A stretch of DNA of 64,000 bases from Bugula neritina (Eukaryota; Animalia; Bryozoa), in assembly GCA_964035545.1 (NCBI GenBank), contig OZ037771.1, positions 1,065,628 through 1,129,627 on the forward strand. The letters run 5' to 3'. The notes beneath the pieces are model-generated. The model saw only the letters and a program-made list of their open reading frames with translations. It was not told the DNA's origin and searched no databases. Shown here piece by piece: positions 21,673 to 44,244 of the stretch. Position 1 is the first letter of the stretch. Every line of letters starts with the position of its first letter. The translations under genes were made by a program, and so were the position numbers.

Positions 21673-24600
21673 CTTCACATACTCGATATATACATTCCAT
21701 TTTTATCATTTATATCAATAAGGATATACTGTATATTTCTTGTATCATACTCTTGATTCTGACGAATACTTTATTGGTTATGATCCAAGACTGATATTAG
21801 CTTTTCACTTCTCAGCTATTTCTTCTATGTATACAAGCTGAATGCCATTTATTGAAATCGTTGTACTTCTTAGCACTATATTTCCAAGCCTTTCTATAAT
21901 ATAATAAACCAGATGATTTCTCTAATCAGATCTCTATATTTTATATCTAGCATTTAATTGCTCTGGGAGTCACCAAACCCTAATAACATGGTCTAGCATA
22001 GACAAGGAAACTTGTATGCCTGTTTAGAATATGCATACCTAACACTTTTCAAAGGCAAAGTTGAAAGAGCTTTGTTTTAGTTTTAATGTGTAGCTTTACC
22101 ACCATTGATATTTAGAAAATACTGCTATCAAAATGCAGATTTATTCTGATGTTGACTGGGAGAGACAACTTTTATTGCTTAGTGTAACTTAGTGTAACAT
22201 TTGGTCTTGATGCTTCTACACATTCTGGAATATCTTTAAAATAGTATGGCAAAGGGACCCACCAACCGTGCAGATGGGCTACACACAAGCTTTGACCTGT
22301 TCCCAGCCCGCTCAACAGTCATTACTGCTGTTTGCACAATGTAAATTTTATGTGTATGAAATTTTCTGTATTTTTATTTCTTGTAAACTCAACGCTCAAC
22401 AAAGAACCAATAAGATCATTGATTAAATGCAAAAAATTTGTAAGAAAATGGAAGACAACTCCTGAGTCGCCAGTTGAACAATATTGTAGAATCATAATAA
22501 TTTACAAGTGATTAAGTTTTAATAACTCATTAGTTATAAATATAGAAGTATACTAAAATACTGACTTATCTAAGACTACACATAGTATCAATTCCAAAAT
22601 AACTATAAAATATGTAACAAATTCATTCCAATAACTTATATAAACAAACATACTTCAATAAAATTTAAAAATAATTACTTTTTACAATAAATCAAACAAT
22701 TATAAATTACATTAAATTGGAAGTGTGGTAGCTGGGCTACTTCATTGTCAACAACATAATTGTCAGTATAAGGTTGTGGATAGTATTTGCAAGAGGCGAG
22801 GGAACAACCCCCACAAGCATATTACAGTTGTTTAGCAGTGTTACCAATGGGCATTATTAACAACCAAGAGTTTAAGCTCAAACAATAGAATTAGCAATAA
22901 TTTAGCACAGGTCTACCATATTTTCTACTTGCAACTAAAGGGTGGCATATGTACTGTACCTCACACCAAATGAGACTGTTGTTGAAATCAAGCAAAAGCT
23001 CTAATTGACAGCATATTTGCCAAGATGGTCAGCAAAGTCACACGAGGTGAGATTTGCATGAAGCTTAGCAAGCTGAGCCCAGCTGTAGCACACAGGTAAC
23101 TGAAACAGGCCAAGTGTAACTAGCAGTCACATTTTTCATACACCAAATGAGCACTGGCACTTAGTAAGTCAAGTACTGGAACTTCAAGAAAAAAATTAAA
23201 AGCAAACAAATGGATTGCTTGCAATAGAAATTTCAAAAATTAATAAAGCACAAAAACGAAAATACATTTCCAGTAAAACTTAAATTAATGGCACTTTGAC
23301 TTAACCCATGTTTATAATAGAATATTCATGGCTTGGACAAATGTCCAAGCCATTACTTATCGAAAGTGGACAACTCCGGATAAGAAATATTGGAGCTGGG
23401 AGGTTATTTCTACAGTAGTCTAGAAATCACTCCATAACAAGCCGAAAATTGATTGGCCAACTCGGGAGAAACCAGTTAAGAGTGCATATATACCGGGTGG
23501 ATGTGCATAGTGTTAGCTTTGTTGCATTACTTCAATTATTCGGATAGATAGGAGATAATAGTGTGCTGCCTGCAACACAGCAGGCTGACGTGGAAACCAA
23601 GAGCCATGCTGTCAGTGCTGGCTGGTATTCATCAAGCTAATCAAGAGCAATACACACGTGAAGGCGGCAGCGGCAGCAGCAGACATAAGCTTATCTGATT
23701 GGCATATGATTGGTAGAGAGGAAAGTTATTTTATTTGACTAAGAAGCTAAAAGGGAAAAGACAAATTGGTGTGTAGCAATGAATAAACCAAGCACAATAT
23801 ATTTGTAGTAGTATAACTAATAACAAAACATGCAAGCAAAATTTCTTTCAAGATATTTAAATAAGCAACATTTGCAGTCTACCATTAAAGTGGGGACTAG
23901 CGGCAAAGGCTGGCTAGTAGCAGCGGTCGCCATAGCAACTATCATACAGGAAATACCAGTTTAGTAGCCAGCAGCTGATTGGTTGATTGGATGGCCATAT
24001 TATTTGTGAACACAGAAGTGACGCAGTGTTATCAACTCAATATTATGACCATCAAATCAAATAAATCAGATTCAGAATCATCAAGCAATATGGCAGCTTA
24101 GCAATAAGCAGCAAGCATTGGTTGCCGTCTAGAATAGGGTGGTGAATAATGCACCCATCCACACTCCTGGCAAAATACTTTAGAACCTAGTCTGAAAATA
24201 AAAACTAAATGGACTCGGTGGAATCTGTTAGATAAAATATCTTGAAAGAACATTATATGCTCAAAAATTCTGTACATAAAACAAAAATATTACTAATAAT
24301 ATAGTCATCTCCAAATAAAATGTAATTTCTAAAAGGATAAAGTTGAAATTGTAATATGGTGATCTACAATAATAATAATAAGAATAATAATAATAACGTG
24401 TTTTGACACTTCGGTTCTTTTGAAAAATACAGTAAAATGATAGAAAAACCTGCTCTCAAACAATACCAATCTGTGGAATATATCTCACATATTTAGTGGT
24501 ACATGCTAAGACATAAAACCTGGCAGACGAGTACCAGACTAAAACAATACATCTTAAAACTAGTAATACATTCATATACATGTAATCAACCTTCTTTCAG

Positions 24601-24792
24601 CGGTTGAACCTAAACCGACAGCTGTGTACTGACTGCCAATCACAGACCACATCTCATACCACTTCAGTTGAACATCATAGAGGACGAGCAAGCATTTTGA
24701 TTGGTCAATATTTGCTAATTAACATTTTGATTGGTCAGCACCACAGTGAGACTGAGTTGTTAAAATAAGATGATTTCCATATATTCAGTTGA

Positions 24793-27700
24793 TTATAGAA
24801 CAAAGTGACGGGCGTAAAGAGAAGATAACTGCTGCTTTAGTGGAATAATTGGAGGAGTAAATGTTATCACAGCAGATAGGAGAGGATTGAGTAAGTCAGT
24901 CCTGTGTATAGAATATAGTCTGCTTTCTTCATGTTCTTATTGGTTTTGAGTGGGACGTAATAGTACATACCATGGGAGATGATAGTATTTACAGTTAGCT
25001 CTAAGGCATTTGCCTTTTACATTGTCTCTACACACTATAACTTTACCATCTGAAACCTCCACATGATCTGCAAGAAAACATAATAGTAACTACATAGTAT
25101 ACAGTAGAAACTACATAGTATACAATAGTAACTACATAGGACACAGTAGTAACTACATAGTACACAGTAGTAACAACATAGTACACAGCAGTAACAACAT
25201 AGTACACAGTAGTAACTACATAGTACACAGTAGTAACTTTATAGTACACAGTAGTAACTTTATAGTACACAGTAGTAACTACATAGTACACAGTAGTAAC
25301 TACATAGCCCACAGTAGTAACTACATAGCCCACAGTAGTAACTACATAGTCCACAGTAGTAACTACATAGTACACAGTAATAACTACATAGTACATAGTA
25401 GTAACTACATAGTACACAGTAGTAACTACATAGTACACAGTAGTAACTACATAGTACACAGTAGTAACTACATAGTACACAGTAGTAACAGCATAATATA
25501 CAGTAGTAACTACATAGTACACAGTAGTAACAGCAATGCATACACTTAGAACTCACCTTCTAATAAGTGAATGTACTTGCAGGCGGGGCGGTTGCATTGA
25601 CCCGACCTATAATCTCTGCACACCGGCAGGGTGTCCAGCAACTAGAAACATAAATGTAATAGTCAGCCACTCAAAGTTCCCTTTCACAAAAGAGAGCAGA
25701 TTTAAAAGCAGCCGAAGTAAATTGACTAATAATGCAGCATAATCTATTTGACTACATGTTCTAGCAGCAATCTGCAGTTACAGCATAGTTCTGAAGAGGA
25801 TGTTGTGTAGTGAAATCATGTGAGCTAGAAGGAAACTGAAAGGGGGAAATAATCAGAGGTTGAGAAGAGTACAACAGAGTCGATGCTATTGTTAAAATTC
25901 ATGACTAAATGCATTGAGGTAACTGAAAGAGATATTGAGATGTGAAACTTGGACTGAGCATGAGTTGATATATTTATATATAAATAAATGGTAAAAGATG
26001 ATAATGAAGATACAGGTGAGATGGAGAGAACATGATAACTGTGCGAGGACGAGCGGGAAACCTGTTACGGCTCAAGCAGTCAAGACATGCGCTTCTCTTG
26101 TACAAAACAGCAATAACAAGGCAAGCTTACACCAGCCCACCAGCTGTACAGACAGCGCAAATAAAGGACTAAATGAAATGGCGAATAAAGAGCAGACAAT
26201 ATAACAGAACCAAATGACAGAAAGAAAGGAACATAAGCATGGTAAGCAGTGGTGGCCATTGCTATAGTAAAAGTTGCAGATGCCGAAACAGCGGACGGAT
26301 GAAAGTAGGAGCAGCATGGTACTACGTAAGTACTAGACGAGTACAAGTTAAGTACTAAACGAGTACAAGTTAAGTACTACGCAAGTACTAGACAAGTACC
26401 ACACTCTCCCACCATCACGCATGTCTGTCTAGACCTGCTGACGTACTGACCTACATAGGTTGGTGTGTGCTGACTCATATCATACCCGTAAACTATAAAC
26501 AAGACAGACAGTAGTGTGAGAGAGCGAGAGGTACTCTGCATTATGTAACGTAGTGTCTTATATGTGTATATGTTACATATACACATATATACCATATATA
26601 CAAGGAGTATACCTTCTATAAGCATATATTCAAAGTATACATGTAGAGCTTACCACTTATAAACATATGCTTATAGGTTTCTAGTGTAACTGGCCTTGTA
26701 TGTATGAAGTATACATGAAGATGTAAGTTGGTATAAAACAGATTCCTAGCCTGAGTCTATTTACTGCAGTTCATAGAGGGGGCAACTCCCGATAGAAGAG
26801 ACAAGTGCGGATAGCAGCAGATTGTACTGGACACGTGGTGAGACAGCTACTGATGTATTCAGGTGAAGTAATCACAATAGTAGATGATGTGTATTACACA
26901 GAGTACATAGAATAGTAATAAACTAGCTCGACTACCCCACAATCAATGAGAAATCACTGCGGTACACATATCATGTCCACCAGGCCAACACTCCCGCCAG
27001 CAAACTTCCATATACCTATTTATGGAAGCAGTTTGCGGGACGGGGTGTCAGCCGGCCGACAATTCTGATCCCCTTAGCCTAAGATCTCCATGCACTCAGT
27101 AAGAGTAAGCAAGTACCTGACTATTGTCATCGTAATAATTGACGTTATCAACATTGTTTGAGAGCAGTTGAATACGGGGCACGGGAGGGGCACCCACGCC
27201 GACACCACCGTTTACTTGGTGGTCGCCGTTGATGGCCCCAGTGCCTGTATTGCTACTACCACTAAACAACGCTGTGGGCATCTGAGCTGCTGGCCAAAAA
27301 CAACAACAATATTAGATGTTGATAAAAGATCAAGGGCATGAAATGCAGTGAATAAAAAGCTTCAGTATATATCTGCAGTACAGAGTACCTGCAGTACAGA
27401 GTACCTGCAGTACAGAGTACCTGCAGTACAGAGTACCTGCAGTACAGAGTATCTGCAGTACAGAGTATCTGCAGTACAGAGTATCTGCAGTACAGAGTAT
27501 CTGCAGTACAGAGTATCTGCAGTACAGAGTATCTGCAGTACAGAGTATCTGCAGTACAGAGTATCTGCAGTACAGAGTATCTGCAGTATAGAGTATCTGC
27601 AGTACAGAGTAGAGTACTTACAAGATACAGGAACATATGCTGGTTGCTGAGGTGCGTAGAGTTGCTGATAAGCTGCCGGGTTGAACATGGGAATACCACC

Positions 27701-30700
27701 CTTGGCAGCATCCAGAGCTTGCCTCTTTATCGGAACTCCCATTCCAGGGACCTGCATTGGCTGAAAGAACAAGATAAATGTGAAGACACGCCCCCAGACT
27801 GGGCACACCCACACAGTATGTAAAATGCTGCCGGAAGCATTTGCACATAAGGACATCACGTCATCACTAGGTTGTGGCTTCTACCAATCAAATTTGTTTT
27901 TGATTTTTTTTTCAAAAATTTTCAAATAAACCACCTAAATTAGTTTGCATGTGAGTATTGGGAGCAAAAAGCCAATTGGTATCGTTTTAATCAAACCGCC
28001 CAATCAGAAGCAAGCAACTGTACAAAACAAGTGCCAACATAGTTAGAAATTTGGTGAAGGTGTTGCGTTGATGAGCTGTGTACACGTGTTGCCACGGGCA
28101 ACCATTGCATTGTGGGCCATGCTATTAGTCAACCATGCAGTACAGACGCGCCAACTCAAATCATGTTGTCAATGATATTGTAGGCGCAGAATGAGGGGTA
28201 AATTTGTTTGTCAAAAAACAACTGAGGGAAACATATAATTAACACATCAGAGTACAAAATAGCAACTACGGGACAATTGCTGTCGGAGAAAGAAGCATAT
28301 CTATAGAGGCAGTAGCGACAGCATGCTGCCTATTTGGACACTAAGGAATATGGTGGAAGAGCTTTAGTTTTAGCTGAAAGTGGCTAAATAGCGAGTACAA
28401 TGAAAGCTCTAGCTGCACTCTAGCTGCTCTAGTAAATAATATTTCTGTTTAGGAGAGCTGGTGACTGGCATATTTAGACGGGACACACCCACCCTAGTTG
28501 CTACTAGTTGTTTCAAATGGATATCAGCACGGCTTGAGATAATTCACATAAATATTGAAAGCAGCGGAATTCTAGGTTTGAAAATTTGATAGCGTTAATG
28601 AAATCAGTACGGATTGATAGCGGCACCAATAGGCGTTAACTCATCCCGCATCACATGCAGTCAGTAGCAATTGAAATGCAAACACAATAGTGAATAAATG
28701 GTGGTGCATAAACAGGCAAGCTTGAAGCTAGACCCGTTGCAAGACAACCAGCTGGGGGGGGGGGCTGAGTATCGTATAGGGGTGCGCTGACGTTGATATG
28801 TCTCTTATTCCCACCCCTCTTCTGTCTGTTACCCTCACTTCTCTATCCCCAGACTAGACCTTCACCTCTGACAGAGAGCTGACAGGCAATGAATGAGGGA
28901 TAGAGAGGTGGGAGTAACGACCCCACCCGTTGCAAGTATGCACTAAGTCCAAACACCAATATAAAGAGTAAAGGTAGACTATAGACTAGGTACCAGCAAT
29001 AACTCTTCCTCCCTCGTCCTTTTCTTAGCCTGCTGCTGTTGTTGTTGCTGACTGAGAGCATCCTGAGAGGCAGCAGTTGAAGCAGCCGCTGCTGCTGCAG
29101 CTTGCAGACTACCCGGTGTGCTCGCTGCCACCGCTGTGGAGAAATGGCCGGCGGCTACTGACGTAGCTAGCCCTGTCTGATAGGCCCCTGCAAGCCCGGT
29201 GTGGGAGCTAGGTAGACTGGCGTGCATCCCCAAGGCTGAGTAGGCAGCCATGTTGTATGCACCCAGGGAGGGCTGACTCACCTGGGGCATTGCGCCGGGG
29301 AGTGCCGAGGCGACTCCTCCAGCTCCAGGGGGCGGCTGGGCAAGACCAAGTAGAGGCTGCGGCTGCTATTATATGGGACAGGTGAAGGTGGGACAGTGCA
29401 GCAGCCGATATAATGTGAAACAGCGTTACGTGGAATAACCCACATCAAGTCAATAACGTCATTAATGATAGCATTGGGTAGGGCAGCAGAATACAAACAA
29501 GTGGGCGGGCAGCATCAGCACCAGCAGCAGCCAATTGGCAGCAAGTGGCAAGAGCACACAACCGGTCAGTCATTGAGCAGCGGCAGCAGAGAGGCCGGAG
29601 CAGCAATTAACCAATCAGGGAGCAGTTGAGTTGACGGCAAGCATTCGCCACAGCAGATCATGTGACCAAGTGACCATGTGATCAAGTGATGTCATGTGAC
29701 CATGTGGTGTCGTGTGGTTGGTTGGTTGCGTGTATGATACATGTGTGGTAGTGGTGGAAGCAGCCAAATAAAAGAGAAAAAATACGGCACCCAGTTAAGT
29801 TGTGTTGAAGATGCAAGTAGTATCTTAAAACATAGCTAGAAAACATGCATTTAGAACATAATGATGGCAATGTCAAGGTTATGCAGCCATCGCAAGGAAT
29901 CTAAAATACAATTTATTTTAGATTTCTGAGCAGGTTGCGTTTGATTTAGTAGTAGCCTGGGGGAGTCTACTAACACTACTCAGCCATGACAACCCAGTGA
30001 GTGTGAATCAACACCCAGGCTACCTGCGACACAGCAGCATAAAAAGGAAGACAACTCTCAAGATTGCATAACACAAGTTGTCTTCCTTTTTATTTCAAAC
30101 TATGCCCCTGAATAATTTAGTCCAGCTTGAACTTACTAAGGCATAACAGATGGAGTCTACAGCATAATAAAAGTATAGAAACACACACATATAGCTCTAG
30201 ATCAAAACGCTACTCTGATATCTAATTAGCAAGAAGTTTGAAATGCCCCACATCAACCATTCTTTGGTTTGAGAAACACAGCTATTAAACAAGGACGCAG
30301 ATAGCGTGTTTAAATTAAAAACTTATGAGACAAAATCGGCAGCATTGAGCGATGCATATGAATGTTTAGTGAAGCCATTGGCAGCAGCAACAAGTGTGGA
30401 GCAGCGGCAGCTGCAAAAGAAGTAGCAGACGGCAGCCAAGTAGCGATCTGCAGCAAAAATTGGGCTTGCAGTAGTGGAGATATGCAGCAGTAGCGAACTG
30501 TACTAGAAGTATGTGTGTGATTAGGACTGCAGTGGGCTGACTAGCATGGTACCTGGCCACATAATGCAGGCCAGGTACCATGGGCTAATCACAAAGTGTT
30601 ACTAAGTATGCAGTAGGGGAAGCTTGCTTTATACCAAACAACTTTAGCCTATTGAGAGTATAGAAAGCAACACATGATGTACATTATGAGAATAACTGTG

Positions 30701-33700
30701 TAGTCTTGGGTCCAGCACACAGTAATCCCACATTTCTGCACTAATGAAAACATTTAACAGTTAGCAAAAACTAAGGCTAGGGATCTCAGTGATAGTAGTA
30801 CTATGACTGAGATAGTAGTACTATGACTGAGATAGTAGTACCATCACTGAGATAGTAGTACCATCACTGATATAGTAGTACCATCACTGAGATAGTAGTA
30901 CCATCACTGAGATAGTAGTACCATGACTGAGATAGTAGTACTATGACTGAGATAGTAGTACCATCTTGATGATACTACTGCTAGTTGTGAACTAATGCTA
31001 TTAAGAAAATATTTATTGGCACAAACTCACTTTTTAACAAAATGTCTAGCAGCAAAGGTTTAGTTTATAATAAAGCACTAGCGGGCAAAAATTAGAAAGA
31101 CAACTTTAAATAAACTAGTTTAGCAGTTCCAGTTGCACGAAGATGTAACAACTCATGCCTAGCACTCATTTATTCTTTCTAGCCATATGACCACATAACT
31201 CTATTAACCACTATCCATATAATATGCCAATATACAGCCTAGTCAGTTCAAACCAAAGCCATGCAGCAAGTTAATGTTAATGCTGTAGCAAGGCTAAACT
31301 TCAGGTGGTTTAAACGTCTTGAAAAAACTTTAAAAATATTGATCGGTAGGCATTTTTAAATTGAAAAATTGTGGGTGCCTGTGAAACCTGAAAGAAAATA
31401 TGGTCTATTAATAACTTTACTGGAATGTCCTTGACCTACAACCTAGGGAGTCACTGATAGTCGCAGCAATCATGTGTACAAAATATGAATACTGTTATAC
31501 AAGGTGATACATGGAGAAATATAACAGATAAATTATATGCTAAAATGTACATCACATCATTATACAGTATAAAGAATTAATGTATAACAATTTAGAGTTG
31601 TTTCCACACTTTCCAAGGAACTACAACTACTTGGACAGTTACACAATGCTTTGAAGAAAACATTCATACAACACTGACAATGCCACAAAGCTCTAGAGTG
31701 TGAATATACAACCAACAATTCCATTCAAAGAAAAGATGGTTAGAGGTGCTTGCAGTCTTAAGATATTAGTTTTATCATACAGGAATTGTTGGTTGCTGGA
31801 AAAGGCCTTGATTGAGGGTTACAATGTCACACAGCCAAAGAAAGTTGCCACACAAGCACTGGTCTAAGGCTAGCCATTGACAACACAGACTTGGTTTGAA
31901 CCAATATTGGGAGGTTGAAATATATAAATACAGCATACTAAATTCTAGGAGCTAAAGCTAGAATTGGTTGAAGAGAAAATATGAATAAGCTAACTATTAT
32001 ATAAGGAATAAAAAGTAGAGCTTAGGTGAGAATTGTAAGGTAATAATGGAAATGTATAGCCAAGATTAGTTGAAATAGAAGAGTTAAGTTAAACTGGTTA
32101 AATAATATTGCTACCACTAGCTGTAGCGTGCTCATACTTTCATTGGTTCTAGATCAACTGGCAAGGGGGAAACAAATTTCCAGGTAACATGCAATCACTA
32201 TTCAGTTAGAACAATGTTTAGAAAGAAGATAATTCCAAAACAAATAATTCTTCGTTTTCAGTCGACACCTTAGAGGCATTATAGAAGTTTGCGGAGTTGG
32301 AGATGAGAGTATAGGCACGCTAGGGGTTCAGCTAGTCGTGGTGAGCTAGTCATACTAGTAGCTACTGTAGCTCTACCACTACAGTGTAGGTTGCATAGAT
32401 TAGCTTAAGGTTCTACATAGTATGGTTGATACTATGACAAGTATTGACTATACCGTTTGTACAGGAGCTTGGTGCAAAGCAGCAGCGGCTAGCACCTGGC
32501 TTAGAGCCTGTTGGGCTGCATGAGTGTTGGCTTGGTTAGCGGCAGCAAGAGCTGCCCTATTCTGGTTGACTTTTGCCAGAAGTTTAGAAGTTGGGTGGTA
32601 ATATTTGCAGTGCTCCCTGCTGCATTTGCCTTTGACGAAGTCCATACAAACGACAGCTAAGTCATCGTCGGTGAGCACGTAATCAGGTGGGTGAGCCCGA
32701 TCACAATCGGATTCGGGCACAGGGCAGCTACCCTCCTTACTGAACTCCGAGCAAACCTAAACATTGATCTGCACTAAAGCTAGGAAAGAGGCAAAGCAGG
32801 CTACACAACATCTACAGTCTAGGGAGAATAGAGAGTACAACGGTGCGCTGTACATAAAGCTAGTAGTGGGAGAGAGGAGTGCAGCAACAGGATTTGCAGG
32901 TCAAAACAAAGAGAAAATAATTCTAATACTAGATCTACTACTATGTTTATTATAACACAGATATATATTATATCACAGATAAATACAACATCTGTTAATC
33001 AGCACTAGCAGTGCTCAGTGACCCCACACTAACTCGCTGCCCAGCATCAATGAACCCCTGGAGATAAACTATGCGCATCTAATCCCACCCTGAGTAATGA
33101 ATTATTCAATACTGCAACTGTATCATTCTGTCTGTTTTCATGTCTACTTGATATGCAAACCAAACTATCAACTGCTGCATTTATACATTCTACTCTATTA
33201 ATCAGTTATTCAATGCAAGAATTCCCCCAGGAATATGCAGTTTTAGACGAGACAGCGAACTAGGTAATACTGAAAGCTGACAGATTGCAGTATATTATGC
33301 AGTACAATATTGACCTGCAGGTGCAAGTTAACAGAAACTTGGCGTGTTGAATAGAGTTGGCTGAAGTGAATGTGTGTGGGTAGCTGCAGCGTACTGCACT
33401 GTACAGCTGTCTGTAGTCACAGCTACCAGCGTAATGAGTCACCTAATGTGTTGGTCACGTGACCTCGCACGTACCTCTGGCCGCCGTAGTCTGCTTAGCA
33501 CTGCTCTCTCCTGTGTAGATGTTGTCTGCTTAGCAAGCGTGTATAAACAATAAAAAGTAGTGCGGGTCCGTGAGGTAACAGAGAGCGAGAGAGCAAGAGA
33601 GAAAGAGAGAGTGGCGCTGTCTATCACAGCTAGCCGACAGCCTGGAGCCAGAGCTAGCTGACTGTCTGGAGCCAGATATTTGAAGAGAGGCAGCAAAGAC

Positions 33701-36431
33701 AGCAGAGAGAAGGCAGCAAGAGACAACACAGCGCAAGGTTTACTGCAGTGAGAAGAGGCGCCGTGTGATTGGCCGAGGAAGTGGAGCGTGGCAGCGTTGG
33801 ATAGGCTGAGGAGCAGAGAAAGCAGACTACAAAAGTTAGCGGAGGCGTTACTGACGGAGCAGGTAGACCCGTACGAAGCTACGCTGCAGCTACTCACAGC
33901 TACCTACTACACTGTATCTAGTGCGGCTAATAGATGTGGCGGGATAAATGAAAAGTCTTTCAAAGTGAGTCAAAACATTCAAACCATTACAGTTACTTTA
34001 TGCTGGGGGGTGGCAAGAAAAAATATTAGAAAATTAGTAGTGATAATGCTGCACATCTATAAAGTAGCAACACAACAGGGGGGGGTAACTACGGACTGCT
34101 GGTCCAAGACACGGACTAGCACCTGTTTGGCAGCGGCATCACTCACAAACATACCTCTAGTCTGTCAGCCCGGGGTGTCTTCTGCCCATTCATTGTGGGT
34201 GTTGTGCTGGAGCCCGAGGTGCTGGGCATTTGTGCTAAGGCTAAAACATAAACCCATGTTGATTATGACTTATACAGAACGCCAAGTATTATGAAGTAAC
34301 ATGTATACAGAGATGAGCACAGTGCTCTAGATACAGAGATGAGCACAGTACTCTAGTATACCACTATACCACATGCATCTAGTAGCGTCCTCAGAATATT
34401 CCACCATCTATTACGTTAGTCTTCAATATTCAAGTTACAGAAATTCAAATATAATTCTTGAAAGGTAAGAACGGGTTTTACAAGATGCAGTAAAGACGGT
34501 GTCCCTAACAGTACCGGTACATCAGAGCAGAGCAAAGCTGAGCATGTAACTTGAGATATAATCTGATAACGTGCACTATTCAATACACCTAGCATGAGCT
34601 TTGGAATAATTTAGTGGAACAAGAAATTTGTAGTGCAATGAGTTGTCTGCTCATTGCCGAGACTCTACTCGCCTCGACCACACGAGAGAACACAGTTTAG
34701 ACATTACAAACACAGAAATCCTACCCTGATTTTCTAAATTAGCAGCAGCAGCAGCGGCAGCAACAGCAGCAGCGTTAGCAGCCTGCCCACCTTGTGATAC
34801 GGCAAACTGTAGAGGCAGCTGTCCGAGGCCGGCAGCCGACATGGGGTTGGCTGCCTGAAGTCCGGGATATTGGTTATACAAATACGGATTATGCTGCAAA
34901 GAAACGGCAAACATGTAGAATATTGCTGGAAGTTGAATGCAAAAAAGAGGGAGCATAACTCCAATAGTACATCATAAAATTCATTTACAGTATTACTAGG
35001 ATAAGAGCAAGACATCATTGGACTACACACATGCCTAGTAAGACATCCTTTACATGTGCAGATAAGCCCCAACTAACTGTAGAGAGCTGAGCTGAGCTAA
35101 GCATAGCATTGACAAGCAGATTATTATTATATTAATAAATCTATCAAATAAATGATAACTAACTCTTGTCCCAGTGTAAGAGTGCTTTCAACAAAACTAA
35201 CATAAAGTGAAGTGAACGAAAACTAGACATGCAGGTGGCACAAGAGGGTAAGCACAGGCTATGGTAATCTAGAGAGCTGAGTCTATTGAACTAGCCACTA
35301 ATATACTACAGAGCACATTCTATAAGCCATGCATGCCATATACTACCAACTATGGACAACCCGGCCTTCAGGTAACTTGCCCACCAGCAGCTAATCAACT
35401 GGTGAGCTGTTCCATAAGTAGACCAGCCTAGGGTGGATGAGCAGTGTGGTGGTAGTGGTAGTGTGATAATAGTGGCAGTGTGGTTATGGTAGTGTGGTGA
35501 GGTAATAGTGATAGTGTGGTGGTAGTGATAGTGACTTAATAGTGGTAGTGAGGTAATAGTGGCAGTGTGGTAATAGCGGTGGTGAGGTAATAGTGATAGT
35601 GTGAGGTAATAGTGTGGTGAGGTAACAGTAGTAGTGAGGTAACAGTAGCAGTGAGGTAATATTGTGGCAGGAGGTAATAGTGGTGGCGGGGTAATAGTGG
35701 CGGTTGGCAAGGAACCAGGGCCAGCTGTAGACTACCAAAGAGGGAAGACTACGAGACAGGTTAGGTATAGATATTACTAACCGTTATCAAGGGTTGACTG
35801 GTCAGGCCTGTATGCAGAACCCCAGCATTGGCAGCAGCTGCATTGGCAGCAGCAGCCGCTGCAGCGTGAGTCAGATACCTATTACCATCAGCCACAGCCA
35901 GGAAGAGAAAGATACAGGTTGTGATAAATCAAGAAGTTACAGTAACACAATCGTGTAGCTTATAATCGTGTTTAAAACAGCGATTTAGTAGGACCGCAGC
36001 AATCCACCAGCTTGGACATGTCACGCCCACACAACTCAGAGACTGTTACATAAACTTATAAACGGTTAGCACCAGTTGATTGGGTTCCGTTTGCCAAGAA
36101 GAAACAATGTCAGTAGCGGCAAGTGTCCAAGATGGCGGGCCACAGCAAGGCTTGTGTGAGTTGATGGTTTTGGCTCAACTCATAATAAAACAAGGATGCA
36201 ATGCAGAGCAAGTCTGGCGGGTGGCGGAGTTAGCATACGAAAACATAAGTCAAATGCAGGTTGCCTACGCCATCTACGTGCCGCCAACAGATGTTTAAAT
36301 GATTGGCTTACTCTGCAACTCAAACTACTCTGTTGGTTAAGTTTTAGTAAATGTAGTGGTAGTAGCAGTAGCAGTAGCAGTAGTAGTAGCAGTAGTAGTA
36401 GTCGTAGTAGCAGTAGCAGTAGCAGTAGTAA

Positions 36432-36479
<48 letters not shown>

Positions 36480-39400
36480 ATGGCCTAAGTCCCCATTCAC
36501 TAACTGTGGGTAATAATTCAGATTATTTATCAGAAGTCAAACTCAATAAATATTCTGAAACAACTACCAATGTAATCTTTAGAGGGTTCATAGTGGAAAT
36601 CACTCGAATATCAGTTAATACTAGCAAACAAATGATTCACTTTAAGGAAATTGGAAAACACAGAGCAGTGGGGAGATAATTTCTTCATAACATAAAATAA
36701 TGATATATTCATTTAGCTAACTACATGGTGGGCAGTGTTCAAGGATCATAGAGCATTGACATTGAATAATGATGCAGAGGAAACCTTGCTTCTTACATTA
36801 ACGTAATTGTACTTAGCTAACAGTATAATTAGATTTAGCAGAGAAGTAGCAAAAATAGTGGAGCATAAATTAGCAATTTAGCAAAGAATTCACTCTTGCA
36901 GCAAGTCAAGTGATGAGCAAACACACCCCAATAGAGCGATAATTGAGCCTCAGGCTATAGATATACACGATGTACTGACGATGTACTGACTGGGAGTCAA
37001 TACTGTGTCTCCTGGCATTAGAAATTGTCTGTCTACACTGAGTTCTGCTGCCTACACTGAGGCCTGCTGCCTACACTGAGGTCTGATGCCCACACTTGAC
37101 TTGCAGCGGAATAGATTGAAATCATGTCACATACAAGCGGGCAGCTGGTGAAACAAAAGAGCTGAGGCTAGGAGATGAGTACTTACTAAGTGACCGGGTA
37201 TTCCAGCCATAGGAATCCCAGGAACACCGGGGATCATGGGAGCTGCTGCCGGTAGCTGAGTGGCGGCAGCAATTTGATTCTGAGCGAAAACTTGATTCCA
37301 GTGATACCTAAAAATACATCGGACAATACAGGTATTACTTACTACTTCTCTACACAACTTCTCTACACAACTTCTCTACACAACTTCTCTACACAACTTC
37401 TCTACACAACTTCTCTACACAACTTCTCTACACAACTTCTCTACACAACTTCTCTACACGACTTCTCTACACGACTTCTCTACACGACTTCTCTACACGA
37501 CTTCTCTACACAACTTCTCTACACGACTTCTCTACACGACTTCTCTACACAACCTCTCTACACAACTTCTCTACACAACTTCTCTACACAACTTCTCTAC
37601 ACAACTTCTCTACACAACTTCTCTACACGACTTCTCTACACAACTTCTCTACACAACTTCTCTACACAACTTCTCTACACAACTTCTCTACACAACTTCT
37701 CTACACAACTTCTCTACACAACTTCTCTACACAACTTCTCTACACAACCTCTCTACACAACTTCTCTACACAACTTCTCTACACAACTTCTCTACACAAC
37801 CTCTCTACACAACTTCAGTCTACAGTACACACAGCACTTCCATGCAACCTGTCAGACCCAAAACTTCAAACTTGACTATAGACACACCAAACAACAAATA
37901 TTAAGGCTAAACTTTACATAACATTTACCAAGCTAACATTAACTCAACATATTTGCTGCTTTGAAGATAAAGTTCAAATAGTATACTGATAACATCCAAT
38001 TTACATCACCAACATAGTGCATATCTTTAGCATTTTATTATTTATTAAAGTTACTCTACACTTTGTTACGGAAAGTATGAATTTTTTAGCCATTTTAGTT
38101 AAATTAAAACTGTCCACTACATATAGTATGTATTTTATTCTTAAAGCCATAAAATGAAGTCATTCCTGAGTTGGTATAAGAATTACATACTTATGGTAAA
38201 AGTTGGAATTACTGTATCTTAGGCCAATTAACTACTCATATATATTATACTATTATTATATATAGCAACTGCATTTCACTAGTATAATATAGCGCAAGAC
38301 TAAAATAGTAAAGTTTGTAGTGAAAGCTAGATATGCTCAAGTATTATACAATTATGTTATATTATTATGGCATTACATTATATATAATATATACTTACTA
38401 TATTACACTGTACATATATAGCCTACTTACTTAATTGCCAAGTTCTGCCTTCCATTTTGTAAAAGCTGCTCTTTGAGATGCTGAGGTGGGTGTAGATATT
38501 TACAGGGTGGTTCTTTACGCTGACACTTGCCCTGCAAGAGAACAGTACACAGTAAGCACACAGTAAGCACACAGTAAGCATACAGTAAGTACACAGTACG
38601 TGGTGAATAAGTAGTGAGTAAGTGAAAACACGAGTAAGTGAAAACAAGAGTAAGTGAAAGCAAGAGTAAGTACCTACAGCCCATGAGAATGAGCAAATAC
38701 ATAGTAAGTAACAACAGTCGAGTGTCTGAGAAGTTGATGAAGATTTTATGCCCAATTAAATTAGAATTTTCAAGGCAACTCCTACTGAGAGAGAGACAAC
38801 TCTGTTGAGAGAACAAATTTCAGCCAATCATTTCTAGGGTTGTGATTGGAAATTCAAATAGGCCGGCACGTTAGGTGTTATAGAGGAAGCGGCGTGGACC
38901 AAACTGCAACAGGTAGGAGAGAGGAGGTATTGGTGCTACTGTAAAGTGATTTACACTAATAACAAGTGTGTACCTTAAGATAGCAACCATTTTATTTTGA
39001 GTATTAGCATTATATTTATCAAGGTGTCCAGCCAAGCTGGCTAGAGGAGCTACGCAGCAATAAGTCAATAATATAGAAACTACCTTATCTCAAAAGATAA
39101 ACAACTCAAACAAGAAAACCTTGAAACTGTGAAGAATGGAAAAGGATTAGCATGTGTATACATACTGTATCAGCTTAGAAGGGGTTCAAAGTTGACCATA
39201 TCAACTTGAAACAGTGAATGTTATATTAGCCAGTCCTTACGTGTAGACACAGCTACCAGCTACCAAGTAACCAAATAACTACTGACATGGCAACCACCCG
39301 GTTGAAATGAATGAAAGAAATATTTGACAAGTGGGAGAATTTGCATAGCAACTAATCACCAGTCAAAGTTGTGCATAAAAAACTGGGCAGTGCAGAGAGA

Positions 39401-39515
39401 AAGCAATGTTGAAGGGAAAAGCTGGTAGAAGACCTCATAGACAACTTCTAGTACTAGTACTAGTACTAGTACTAGTACTAGTAGTAGTAGTAGTAGTAGT
39501 AGCAGTAGCAGTAGC

Positions 39516-39562
<47 letters not shown>

Positions 39563-39704
39563 AAGTAGTAGTAGTAGCAGTAGTTGTAGTAGTAGCACTG
39601 GTAGTAGTAGTCACACTAGTAGTAGTACTAGTACTAGTAGAAGTAGTAGTAGTACTAGTAAAAGTAGTAGTAGTACTAGCAGTAGTAGTAGCAGTAGTAT
39701 TAGC

Positions 39705-39762
<58 letters not shown>

Positions 39763-42700
39763 CTAGCACTAGTAGTTAGTAAACTGTAGAGTATTCTTCT
39801 AATGTTGTGGTGAGATGGAGGAGCAGGTGCCCCTCCCTGGCTGAGAAGCAGGTGCCCCTCACCCAGGGAGGGGAACCTGCTGCAGCAGAAATAATTAGAA
39901 TATCTGGCAGGACTAGCGTGACACATTAGAGTAGGTACTGACACATTAGAGTAGGTACTGACACATTAGAGCAGGTACTGACACATTCGATCAGATACTC
40001 TTACAATACTGATGCAGTATGACGTAGCATATCACTCTCGTTGTCAGCATTTGTACACTCAGAATTTACAGCAACTTTCTTCTAAGATCAACCCAGTAGG
40101 AACTACACAAGGGTGAGAGGATGAAAGGGTGAGAGGATGAAGGGGTGAGAGTGTGGCAGATGAGGGAAGGAAATGTCAGTGAGACCATAAAACAAGAAAT
40201 AGTTTCATATCTGCTAGCAGCACCCAACATTAACTTGCTGATAGAAAAAGGCATTTAGGAGAATTTCAGGGTAATTAGCACTCTGCCAAAGAACATAAAT
40301 ATAAATAGGTAATATGAATAGGCATACAAGTCTTCTAATGAGCACAAATGAGCAAAAACAACATATCTAAGAATACAGAATGAAAATTAATTGGCTCAAA
40401 TAAGTACAGAGCTGGTGTCCATTCTATTTAGCTGACTTCCACATCTCAAAACAAACTGTAGGAACAATAGAAGCAATGAGTTAAAACACCCAGCAATCAA
40501 TGAACGCAGCCATATGTATTTCAGCACGTTGTCGCGGCCCATTGTTAGAGGAATTATGTACACCACACAATGGACTGTGAATCTGAATATGAAGAAACTG
40601 AGGGCCCCCACTTGATGTACAAGTCATTAGAACGTGGGCTTTTCTTCTCTTGACAGTTGATTACACAAGACAACAACAAGCAGAACATATTTCATGCTAA
40701 ATGGTCTAAATAACGCTGAATATCCTAAGATGGCAGAATGACCAATTGAAGCTAGACTGCACAGTTAGTAGCCAGTGGCTACTACCACCGCTGAGTAGGG
40801 GGTGCTTAGTGCTACACCCCCAATCTATTAGTGAATAACATTAGGTCCTCAGTTGAACAGCTGATAATGAGAAATCCTGGTGCATCTGGTCACAATTGGA
40901 TTAACAGAAAACATATTTGTGCTAACTTGAAAAATATCTCCCACATCACGTAGTAGAGTATAGAGAATACAAGATGGTGAAACATATCCCACATCACGTA
41001 GTATAGAGTATAGAGAATACCAGATGGTGAAATATCTCTCACATCACGTAGTAGAGTATAGAGAATACAAGATGGTGAAACATGACCAGCCAAAACAATA
41101 AATGAATATATAAATATAAAGTAGTAAGTTTTGAGGACGGCACTAGCTGGTGAACACAAAGTGACATGTAAATGAATTACCCAGATCCAAAGTGAGTTTA
41201 TACTTATAGTTACCCAGAGCGAGTTTATACTTATAGTTACCCAGAGCGAGTTTACACTTATAGTTACCCCATCTGAGGAGGATTCGTCAGGATTACTCTG
41301 TGGTGATGATGTCACACCGTACACGGCGTAGGGGTCTTGGCCCACTGGGGGTGGGGGCACCTGCCCAGTCGGGATCCAGCCATTTTGGTACATGATAGAA
41401 GCAAAAGGAGAGATTTCAAAACAGTCCACACAGTGTTTGGACAGATCCTTGAATACGCTGCACTTGGAGACAGCTTCACTGCCTGAGAGAACGAGCGAGT
41501 GTTAGTGTCGTAGTTGATGGTGTAGTTGATAGTGTAGCGCGAGAGAGAGAACCTGCCTAGCACTGACTGAGTACTGTCACCAACTGATAAAGCTTACAGT
41601 TTACACACCAGCAACCAGCATATTTTCAAACGAAATTGTTGATAGATAAGGGAGCGAAGTTGCTGTAGGAGCAAAGCAATAGCCAAGTGACTTGGTAACG
41701 TAGAGTGGGTTTCCTAGTAGAGTGGTATGTCGTCTCCTAGCCTACAAGGATGTGCTGAGATGTGCTAAGGGGATGTGCTGAGATGTGCAATAGCCAGCCA
41801 ACTGCATCTACTGCTACCAGCCAGTAAGCTCATCTAATACTTAGTGATTAATTATTGCAGAGTAGCATTTATGGGTGGACATTAACATTTAGGCAGAAAC
41901 CATAAAATTCATCTTATCTCACCCACAGCAGTAGTAAATGATAACACAGGTACTTAGTCTAAATTTCTGTCAAGTACAATATAATGTGCATGTGTCAGTG
42001 TATCATTGAAGAGGCTAGCTTGTATGAACATTTGGGTTTAGTCAAGGCATTGATGGATGGTTTATAAATTATCTTATAAACTTTAAGGTCACCAAGTCCC
42101 AAAGGTCAAATTACAAAGCATTTTATTTGCCGATCAATGATATGCTGCCTTCTTCATTATATTTAAAGAAGCATAAAGGAAACCTGAGGCAGCATCATGT
42201 CTGTCTGTTTGTCTGTGTTCCAGCAGCAAATAAATATATCAGTTTCAATAGAGTAAGATGGGCGGGAGTCAATGGCCTTCAGCTTATCCATATATAAAGG
42301 AGTTGGTGGAAAACTATTAGTTAGCTGATCACAATCTGCAGTCTACACAGTTTAGTGTGCTATAGTTTAGGAGTTGTTTCCTTTATGTATACAACGGCAC
42401 GTGAGCTTAGAGAAATGCATAATATGTTGAAATATCCAACAATAAATTGCAGCAAAGGTAAAAATTCTCATAAAACACAGATAAAGTGTAGATAACTTTA
42501 TAGATTATAATGCATTAATAATTCAACAATCAATTCATATGTGTTGAGTTAGATCCCAGAGCACTGCTTAGCATATCTATGAATCAGCATCTAACATGTG
42601 TATAAACTTTAGATGTTGGCATAGACTGGGTCCCTCGAGACCATAACTATTGTCCTCGGTTTGTTAGGCAGTTTCAACAGCTGAACACCAGCTCTGTATT

Positions 42701-44244
42701 AATATAATACTTGGAGCACCATTGCTTAAATTAGTGTGTGCATATAATACAGAGTCTAACTGACTGTATATATACAGAGTTTAACTGACTGTGCATATAC
42801 AGAGTTTAACTGACTGTGCATATACAGAGTCTAACTGACTGTGCATATACAGAGTTTAACTGACTGTGCATATACAGAGTCTAACTGACTGTGCATATAC
42901 AGAGTTTAACTGACTGTACACATACAGCTAGTTCAACATGTGATAGTAGGAGTTGTCTATCCACTGTTCCACAGACAAGTGCAGCAAATCTACTGAATTA
43001 GAGAAAGGAACAAGAACCTTCCCTGGACATCTAAAAGGAAGCAGCCAATACCAAAGTTCGACAATCACAGTGGTCAGGGAAAAGACGGAGAGGACTTGAA
43101 CCAATGGCACGAGAGAAGACAATGAACCAGCCAATCGAGGACAAAGAGAGACTACTTTGGCTGCAGAAGAAACCTTCACAGACCAAAGGAATGATAGGGA
43201 TGTGGATATAACTTCCAACTCAGTTACGTCAGGTAGACACCCATGCCTTCACATCATGACAGTCCGCCAGAATAATAAACAAGCAGTCAGTGTCTGAACC
43301 CTGACACCATTTTGTTTATATGCAAAATAATTAAACCGACATTTTTTCCTGCTTACAAGCAGCAGCCCTGGTAGAGACAGCACCTCGTACTTTTAGTATT
43401 CACTAGTCTACTTACATGCATGTTATACGGTGTCTATATGTTATATTTATATGTTATACAGTGTCTATATGTTATATTTATATGTTATACAGTGTCTATA
43501 TGTTATATTTATATGTTATACAGTGTCTATATGTTATATTTATATGTTATACAGTGTCTATATGTTATATTTATGTTATACAGTGTCTATATGTTATATT
43601 TATATGTTATACAGTGTCTATATGTTATATTTATATGTTATACGGTGTCTATATGTTATATTTATATGTTATACAGTGTTATATATACACGTTATATTTA
43701 TATGTTATACAGTGTTATATATATACACATGGATGTGATACCAACTAAGTACCATCTACATACACCAGGTAAGTACCATCTACATATACCAGGTAAGTAC
43801 CATCTACATATACCAGGTAAGTATCATCTACATATATCAGGTAAGTATCATCTACATATACCAGGTAAGTACTATCTACATATATCAGGTAAGTACTATC
43901 TACATATATCAGGTAAGTACTATCTACATATATCAGGTAAGTACCATCTACATATACCAGGTAAGTACCATCTACATATACCAGGTAAGTACCATCTACA
44001 TATACCAGGTAAGTACCATCTACATATATCAGGTAAGTACACACACCTTAATACTGTCGAAGCAACACATGACACGCCCGTTCTGCTGATCAACGTGAGG
44101 AGGGGGATGAGCGAATTTACACTCCTCTTCCGTCCTGGTGCACCTATTCCTTTGGAATTCTCGACACACCTCCAGCGTCAGCCATCTTGAATCCTTTGAG
44201 CTGTTGAAAAGAAGGGCTTGGGGTATGGCTGTCTGTGTGGTCAT
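24793..44244 (-). CDS. mbl: Muscleblind/MBNL RNA-binding protein, ~554-aa model with six CCCH fingers. Exons in transcript order: 44047-44244, 38431-38531, 37187-37307 (or 35782-35878), 34725-34893, 34155-34240, 32454-32756, 29282-29365, 27622-27760, 27117-27289, 25557-25641, 24971-25067, 24793-24901
   Basis: [61 protein letters not shown]|VC, KRQALD..GIPMFNP. All junctions GT-AG and in phase (1665 nt including stop). Confidence 0.9.
24971..25067 (-). CDS. mbl: mbl exon encoding ZnF6 ([33 protein letters not shown])
   Basis: Acceptor ttcttgcag; donor gtatgt; CX7CX4CX3H; not in ORF track. Confidence 0.88.
25082..25530. repeat. 21-bp minisatellite (GTAGTAACTACATAGTACACA)n in the ZnF5-ZnF6 intron
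   Basis: About 21 copies; source of the YYVVTTV ORF. Confidence 0.95.
25557..25641 (-). CDS. mbl: mbl exon encoding ZnF5 ([28 protein letters not shown])
   Basis: Acceptor tttctag; donor G|gtgagt; CX7CX4CX3H; not in ORF track. Confidence 0.88.
27370..27612. repeat. 16-bp minisatellite (CTGCAGTACAGAGTAT)n
   Basis: About 15 copies. Confidence 0.95.
30788..30965. repeat. 20-bp minisatellite (GATAGTAGTACCATCACTGA)n
   Basis: About 9 copies. Confidence 0.93.
32454..32756 (-). CDS. mbl: mbl exon with ZnF3 and ZnF4
   Basis: [24 protein letters not shown]...[21 protein letters not shown]; 303 nt, phase 0-0. Confidence 0.9.
35445..35705. repeat. Degenerate GTG/GTA-rich simple repeat
   Basis: Direct inspection. 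Confidence 0.8.
36352..36480. repeat. (AGT/AGC)n microsatellite
   Basis: Source of poly-S/V/L ORFs. Confidence 0.95.
37343..37815. repeat. 13-bp minisatellite (ACTTCTCTACACA)n
   Basis: About 36 copies. Confidence 0.95.
38431..38531 (-). CDS. mbl: mbl exon completing ZnF2 ([34 protein letters not shown])
   Basis: Acceptor ctcttgcag; donor gtaagt. Confidence 0.93.
38540..38672. repeat. 11-bp (CACAGTAAGCA) and ~16-bp (GAGTAAGTGAAAACAA) repeats upstream of the ZnF2 exon acceptor
   Basis: Direct inspection. Confidence 0.85.
39448..39778. repeat. (AGT)n microsatellite with variants
   Basis: Source of poly-T/V/L ORFs. Confidence 0.95.
40930..41082. repeat. ~50-bp repeat, 3 copies
   Basis: ATATCTCCCACATCACGTAGTAGAGTATAGAGAATACAAGATGGTGAA units. 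Confidence 0.85.
42745..42927. repeat. 25-bp minisatellite (ATATACAGAGTTTAACTGACTGTGC)n
   Basis: About 7 copies. Confidence 0.93.
43420..43725. repeat. 31-bp minisatellite (TGTTATACAGTGTCTATATGTTATATTTATA)n
   Basis: About 9 copies. Confidence 0.93.
43747..44040. repeat. 24-bp minisatellite (AAGTACCATCTACATATACCAGGT)n directly after the first coding exon donor of mbl
   Basis: 12 copies of CAGGTAAGTA at 24-bp period. Confidence 0.95.

Follow-up and report, generated by a model that had tools for sequence, protein, structure and literature searches.

A predicted third tandem zinc-finger pair, probably governed by alternative splicing, in the muscleblind gene of the bryozoan Bugula neritina

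Results

A third zinc-finger pair at the end of a bryozoan muscleblind gene

We examined a 64,000-nucleotide (nt) stretch of the Bugula neritina genome (contig OZ037771.1, positions 1,065,628 to 1,129,627), hereafter the window, whose own numbering is used throughout. We consider it probable (roughly 0.8) that the part described here is a single muscleblind (mbl/MBNL) gene of this bryozoan, and that its last two coding exons encode a third tandem zinc-finger pair (TZF3), translated only when an optional exon is spliced in ahead of them. A six-frame scan of the window located six CCCH fingers of the MBNL type, all on the minus strand: ZnF1 (44107-44166), ZnF2 (approximately 38490-38549, with its first Cys in exon 1), ZnF3 (32691-32753), ZnF4 (32595-32648), ZnF5 (25567-25620) and ZnF6 (24979-25032). 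The mbl locus was found as a single copy in the genome. A first-pass annotation of this DNA, made by a model from the sequence alone, had proposed six fingers with a third, C-terminal pair, and this was borne out by the scan, the splice sites and the Pfam scores, as were the boundaries and translation it gave for the ZnF5 exon.

The ZnF5 exon (25557-25641, 85 nt, minus strand) encodes the lead LLDTLPV, a Cx7Cx4Cx3H finger and the residues LLE, and is bounded by consensus splice sites (tttctag/TTG...GAAG/gtgagt, where a slash marks the exon edge) with RNA joints on both sides. The coding part of the last exon (24937-25067, minus strand; acceptor ttcttgcag/AT) holds ZnF6, also Cx7Cx4Cx3H, followed by a 14-residue tail and a stop codon at 24937-24939, and its 3' untranslated region (UTR) extends to at least 24559. 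Both exons passed the gathering score of 27 for the Pfam family zf-CCCH_10, with 28.4 bits for the ZnF5 exon and 43.5 bits for the ZnF6 exon. Together they carry the T-L-P-V-C lead, the Cx7Cx4Cx3H spacing twice, and V-E-V and D-G-K-V within a linker of about 15 residues.

RNA joints and the reading frame

Four public RNA runs were aligned to positions 23900-29400 (5,501 letters). All were contig sets and were 95-99% like the window, so the runs derive from another strain or a sibling species. Spliced contigs from two studies (X1 and X3) contained the joints 27760/28994, 25641/27622 and 25067/25557, all GT..AG. The latter two joints place the ZnF5 and ZnF6 exons in mbl transcripts, and the last of them is the ZnF5 to ZnF6 junction of the first-pass annotation. 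A further splice proposed there, from 24971 to 24901, was rejected: contigs ran unspliced over 24680-25067 (X1) and 24921-25067 (X3), and the tail and stop beyond 24971 are conserved in a relative (see below). No splice is made at 24971, and translation ends with the stop at 24937-24939.

Which protein is made from these exons depends on what stands before ZnF5. The preceding exon observed in RNA, exon A (27622-27760, 139 nt, minus strand), comprises 46 codons and one base and therefore ends in phase 1, while the ZnF5 exon must be entered in phase 0 for its finger to be read. In the observed join of 27622 to 25641 the ZnF5 exon was one base out of register and was read for 11 codons to a stop at 25607-25609, 50 nt ahead of the last junction. 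A 42-nt alternative cassette (26451-26492, minus strand; joints 26492/27622 and 25641/26451, in run X1 only) left the shifted frame unchanged and lengthened the short tail of the four-finger form by 14 residues. To bring the fingers back into frame, an exon whose length is 2 mod 3 has to intervene. Exon B (27117-27289, 173 nt, minus strand; canonical ag/...gt) fits this, and its combination with the cassette places a stop inside the cassette, so that a six-finger protein requires inclusion of exon B together with skipping of the cassette.

We propose that alternative splicing of exon B toggles between two products. Spliced between exon A and the ZnF5 exon, exon B would allow TZF3 to be translated, giving a six-finger protein; with exon B skipped, the early stop would leave a four-finger protein and both finger exons would act as 3' UTR. 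An optional exon of 173 nt would in this way decide whether 61 zinc-finger residues are protein or 3' UTR, which for the bryozoan itself is mainly a point of annotation.

Conservation of exon B and the finger exons

A protein search with the open frame of exon B returned nine open reading frames (ORFs) on other public contigs, with 54-66% identity overall, plus one near-identical and one partial match at 92%. The last 21 residues of exon B were identical in eight of the nine ORFs save for one position, directly ahead of the final Q, which was S, A or Q; the ninth began just within this stretch, and all nine diverged right after the donor. Two long contigs from two relatives (L006 and L009) kept the order of ZnF3/4 exon, exon B and ZnF5 exon. 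L006 also contained exon A, ending PAYVPVS with the same next residue as in the window, and the ZnF6 exon; the L009 contig stops before the ZnF6 exon. Splice sites matching those of the window were observed in the relatives for the exon B donor, both ends of the ZnF5 exon and the ZnF6 acceptor. One other ORF (P0015) was 95% identical to ZnF6.

Codon changes between the window and L006 were strongly biased towards synonymous ones in the finger frame. Over the last 21 codons of exon B (63 nt) there were 8 synonymous and no non-synonymous changes, with 8 of 12 differences at third positions; the ZnF5 exon had 11 synonymous and 2 non-synonymous changes (12 of 14 differences at third positions), and the ZnF6 exon with its tail had 20 and 4 (19 of 24). 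The 60-nt flanks of each compared piece showed random identity to L006. Both the read-through tail after ZnF6 and its stop at 24937-24939 were conserved in L006, and the 42-nt cassette had a counterpart at the matching place (L006 10178-10243, 85% identity over 66 nt). Exon B and both finger exons are under purifying selection in the finger frame, including the read-through tail and stop. Since the change is biased towards synonymous positions in that frame, a role as UTR cannot explain the conservation. We therefore regard exon B as a real, optional exon, a judgement based on its conservation and not on RNA.

Orthology of the third pair

A maximum-likelihood tree was built from 56 finger pairs of 22 named annotated proteins, from sponge to lamprey. 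The third pairs formed one bipartition (98/95), as did the first pairs (98/97), and TZF3 stood apart from vertebrate ZnF3/4. The grouping was retained when the flanking residues were removed, with Shimodaira-Hasegawa-like approximate likelihood ratio test (SH-aLRT) values of 88 for third pairs and 90. In a tree of individual fingers the window fingers fell beside ZnF5s and ZnF6s of other animals, and odd and even fingers were split at 99, which indicates that whole pairs were duplicated. The window fingers were 70-78% identical to shrimp ZnF5 and ZnF6.

One profile was made for each pair class (TZF1, TZF2 and TZF3), and the window exons were scored singly, with no joined pair. The ZnF5 exon scored 50.0 bits with the TZF3 profile against 24.3 and 19.5 bits with the other two, and the ZnF6 exon 54.6 bits against 42.4 and 37.9. 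The two exons adjoined without a gap at TZF3 profile positions 29 and 31. By these comparisons the bryozoan pair is not lineage-specific and is an orthologue of the third pair present in annotated Mbl isoforms across animals.

These results bear on the evolutionary proposal of the first-pass annotation, namely that the gene keeps both a vertebrate-type second pair, following RADRLEV, and a distinct LLDTLPVC...VCRD...CKYYH pair, and that the two are non-orthologous modules of a six-finger ancestor lost reciprocally in vertebrates and flies. Both kinds were found in the gene, the trees separate them, and the antiquity of both supports a six-finger ancestor. The reciprocal loss did not hold up, because flies keep the vertebrate-type pair: all three pair types occur in fly genes, and isoforms of hagfish and lamprey MBNL1 retain six fingers.

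Distribution of TZF3 across animals

When 1.84 billion cluster representatives were searched by phmmer with the ZnF6 exon, 592 hits were returned, among them many proteins with six matched fingers, of which the last was the best match. Six-finger or TZF3 proteins were observed in sponges (Sycon, Oscarella) and corals (Stylophora, Pocillopora, Porites, Acropora), and TZF3 in nematodes (Trichuris, Romanomermis), molluscs (Pinctada, Biomphalaria, Mytilus), arthropods (ticks, scorpion, spiders, shrimp, barnacle, mosquitoes, Drosophila simulans, Eurosta), echinoderms, hemichordates, tunicates (Ciona and Styela) and amphioxus. Among cyclostomes, hagfish MBNL1 X5 and lamprey MBNL1 X15 have all six fingers. 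Each of these pairs opens with the TLPVC lead, has Cx7Cx4Cx3H spacing in both fingers and links them by 15 residues that fit L.ED.VEV.DGKV.V. Protostomes and hemichordates carry Y-x-D-x-x-x-Q ahead of the TZF3 lead, which is also how exon B ends.

The six-finger form is old and widespread, and is already present in the public annotation of many phyla with little discussion. When the hagfish TZF3 was used in a word-based search, the matches included lampreys and invertebrates but no jawed vertebrate, and TZF3 is likely absent from jawed vertebrates. Judged by sequence, the jawed-vertebrate proteins are the only ones without TZF3 among those we found, and theirs is the only loss seen, not mirrored in flies.

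Predicted structure

An AlphaFold model of TZF3 from the hemichordate Ptychodera, computed from an alignment of 22 TZF3s, had a predicted local distance difference test (pLDDT) score of 86. Compared with the crystal structures of MBNL1 ZnF3/4 and ZnF1/2, it gave template-modelling (TM) scores of 0.70-0.78 at a root-mean-square deviation of about 2 Å, so that an MBNL-type fold is shown, as a model, for a TZF3 homologue. The bryozoan exon sequence alone matched the same MBNL1 Protein Data Bank (PDB) entries at approximately 1e-10. On this modelling TZF3 may be a third MBNL-type module for RNA binding, lying about 250 residues beyond TZF2.

Weighing the alternatives

Several observations weigh against a six-finger protein in this animal. 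All spliced contigs skipped exon B and met the stop at 25607-25609 ahead of both fingers. Neither the joint from 27622 to 27289 nor that from 27117 to 25641 was seen in the four RNA contig sets, nor was a six-finger mRNA with exon B seen in this species among their spliced contigs; assembled contigs lose rare variants, and the analysis covered four runs, which limits this negative. In the contigs seen, the TZF3 finger exons are joined to mbl exon A in RNA out of frame, and the in-frame form, which needs exon B, is supported by conservation only. The first-pass annotation had spliced exon B in frame to ZnF5; the exon itself stood by its conservation, and that junction did not appear. Exon B was covered only by low-depth contigs that crossed its boundaries unspliced. 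The RNA runs, at 95-99% likeness, are of another strain or a sibling species. The structural model is that of a hemichordate homologue and not of the bryozoan pair, and no report of RNA binding by TZF3 was found in the literature searched. The intron between 28994-29366 and 27622-27760 was also covered unspliced by long contigs (27732-29023; X1 and X18), so the runs contain much pre-mRNA or DNA and the unspliced cover of exon B says little. Given the conservation, we infer that this animal does make an isoform containing exon B.

The skipping of exon B would be expected if the ZnF5 and ZnF6 exons were only 3' UTR, transcribed but untranslated relics of a lost coding module. Against this, all eight zinc ligands are intact (8/8), the finger exons together differ from L006 by 31 synonymous and 6 non-synonymous codons, with the third-position excess given above, and the end of exon B changed only synonymously between intron flanks of random identity. 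Constraint on a UTR would not track one reading frame. We regard a relic as very unlikely and rejected it on the pattern of synonymous change relative to L006. Exon B and the finger exons could, in addition to mbl or in its place, belong to a small gene of their own that starts in the intron before exon B and yields a stand-alone two-finger protein from the Met near the beginning of exon B; an in-frame ATG in exon B (MPTALF...), the low-depth contigs unspliced over the exon B acceptor, and stand-alone TZF3 entries in databases, such as one of 208 residues from Penaeus japonicus, would agree with it. Yet the finger exons were spliced to mbl exon A in two studies, the module is the C-terminus of full-length Mbl in other phyla, and the acceptor and phase of exon B suit exon A, with which they are conserved; the short entries in databases have the look of incomplete gene models. 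We consider such a gene improbable.

A recent duplication of ZnF3/4 or ZnF1/2 in bryozoans or lophotrochozoans, giving rise to ZnF5/6, would account for the closest relative of the ZnF6 exon in this genome being ZnF4 of the same gene, at 47% identity. The much closer resemblance to shrimp ZnF5 and ZnF6, the placement of the window fingers among ZnF5s and ZnF6s, the lead of the TZF3 profile over TZF1 and TZF2 by 12-26 bits, and the union of sponge, coral and bilaterian TZF3 in one supported group all oppose it. A lineage-specific duplication is extremely improbable and was ruled out by the profiles and trees. The reading we retain is therefore of one mbl gene with an ancient third pair whose translation would depend on exon B.

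The remainder of the gene

The remaining exons, all on the minus strand, carry the hallmarks of the muscleblind family. The first coding exon (44047-44244) begins with an ATG at 44244 and contains the LEV box RWLTLEV, ZnF1 with Cx7Cx6Cx3H spacing as in muscleblind N-terminal pairs, and the first Cys of ZnF2, followed by a GT donor after 44047; it was 80% identical to Pinctada Mbl residues 18-67 and scored 91.7 bits with the TZF1 profile. ZnF2 straddles the first two exons, an arrangement also present in insects and vertebrates. The second exon (38431-38531, boundaries approximate; acceptor cttgcag/GGC, donor AA/gtaagt) holds the remainder of ZnF2 and the K-x-Q-L-x-x-N-G-R motif (approximately 38430-38470), and was 75% identical to Pinctada residues 62-101. 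These first two exons were placed by sequence evidence and not by RNA.

ZnF3 and ZnF4 lie on a single TZF2 exon (32499-32756, 3' end approximate), the preceding exon ending PRADRLE, so that the second pair has the R-x-D-R-L-E-V lead of muscleblind. This exon scored 65.9 bits with the TZF2 profile, 54.6 with TZF1 and 42.2 with TZF3, and is kept in L006 and L009. ZnF3 was divergent throughout this bryozoan clade, with Cx8Cx6Cx3H spacing (window 32691-32753; L006 3994-4056; L009 3055-3117), its usual C-R-E-F/Y start replaced by CSEF, CPDY or CPEF, and the aromatic residue before the His missing (CDRAH, CEKAH, CDKAH). Its normal RNA contacts may have been lost; ZnF4 is well conserved.

An Ala/Gln-rich exon (28994-29366) was spanned by RNA contigs X1 and X3 and is joined to exon A (27760/28994). 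Exon A, with RNA joints on both sides and conserved in L006, encodes IKRQALD...PAYVPVS plus one nt, and its K-R-x-A-x-D/E...Y-Q-Q region matched mollusc, fly, lamprey and jawed-vertebrate-type sequences. Near-perfect minisatellites were observed directly after the 5' splice site in several mbl introns, at 43738-44040 (24 nt x 12.6), 37344-37816 (13 nt x 36.4), 27370-27611 (16 nt x 15.1) and 25084-25531 (21 nt x 21.3), the last of these making up almost the whole intron between ZnF5 and ZnF6.

Discussion

MBNL proteins have a central place in myotonic dystrophy; in reviews they figure as four-finger proteins in vertebrates and as two- to four-finger proteins in invertebrates. The bryozoan gene points to a third conserved pair, predicted to bind RNA, that model-organism work has largely passed over and that lamprey, hagfish, Ciona and amphioxus keep. 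No description of a third tandem pair in muscleblind was found in the searchable literature. A phylogenetic supplement of 2023 aligned TZF1 and TZF2 only, and a review of 2025 gives four fingers and states that the muscleblind family is absent from plants.

Proteins with three CCCH pairs in collinear order were nevertheless found in streptophytes, algae as well as land plants: Closterium, Mesostigma, Klebsormidium, Marchantia (named 'muscleblind'), Selaginella, ferns, Ginkgo and conifers (P0009, P0013, P0026, P0232 and others). They are related to rice and maize 'C3H28' and were noticed through a Closterium protein among the phmmer hits. Like the animal pair, the third plant pair has an LPVC-type lead (RLPVC), and the animal TZF3 profile was its best match in several species (in Closterium 93.7 bits against 73.8 and 65.9); it grouped weakly with animal TZF3 (71/76). 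Plant pairs 1 and 2, in contrast, grouped together and not with animal TZF1 and TZF2. We give even odds to a broader view in which the six-finger layout is ancestral in muscleblind and perhaps predates animals, the bryozoan TZF3 is switched by a frame-setting exon, and, of the proteins found, only the jawed-vertebrate ones are without TZF3. If that is true, the four-finger picture taken from human MBNL is a derived and reduced state, which is undescribed in the literature searched.

The closest named counterparts of the bryozoan gene are six-finger isoforms in RefSeq: Stylophora XP_022791213.1, Glandiceps XP_077987304.1, Ciona XP_009862110.1, Eurosta mbl X27, Biomphalaria X15, Petromyzon MBNL1 X15 and Myxine MBNL1 X5. 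All share with it TZF1 after a WL.LEV lead, TZF2 after DRLEV, the KR.A.D...YVPV region, a variable segment and then TZF3. The RefSeq isoforms are computer-predicted, whereas the bryozoan junctions are partly checked against RNA, and the spliced RNA seen leaves out the frame-setting exon; another difference is an unusually divergent ZnF3 in the bryozoan.

Fly genes resemble that of the bryozoan in having both kinds of 'second' pair, which in flies arise through alternative splicing. Drosophila mbl has a vertebrate-like second pair on exon 5, and its MblF isoform (FlyBase RF) has a second pair described as poorly conserved, with 32% identity to human TZF2 (Irion 2012, PMC3315501). That study regards the MblF pair as a TZF2 of poor conservation rather than as a third module conserved in its own right, and in the literature searched it is only under this description that TZF3 surfaces. 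Among RefSeq isoforms, D. simulans X28 consists of TZF1 and TZF3 and Eurosta X27 of all three pairs, and the C-terminal pair of both groups with the bryozoan ZnF5/6 class. By analogy with its sibling D. simulans, we infer that MblF itself is of the TZF3 type.

A different route to six fingers was observed in the lamprey paralogue 'muscleblind-like 2a' (P0010), which has two tandem TZF1-type pairs and a divergent TZF2, without TZF3. Jawed-vertebrate MBNL1-3 (four fingers; 3D2N, 3D2Q, 3D2S, 5U6H) have TZF1, TZF2, the LEV box, K.QL..NGR and KR.ALE/D in common with the bryozoan protein but, unlike it, are without TZF3. What TZF3 targets, and what followed from its loss in jawed vertebrates, are the questions this comparison raises. 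The difference falls at one place in the protein: where lamprey MBNL1 enters TZF3, jawed-vertebrate MBNL1 presumably ends in a short tail, as we take the human C-terminus to do.

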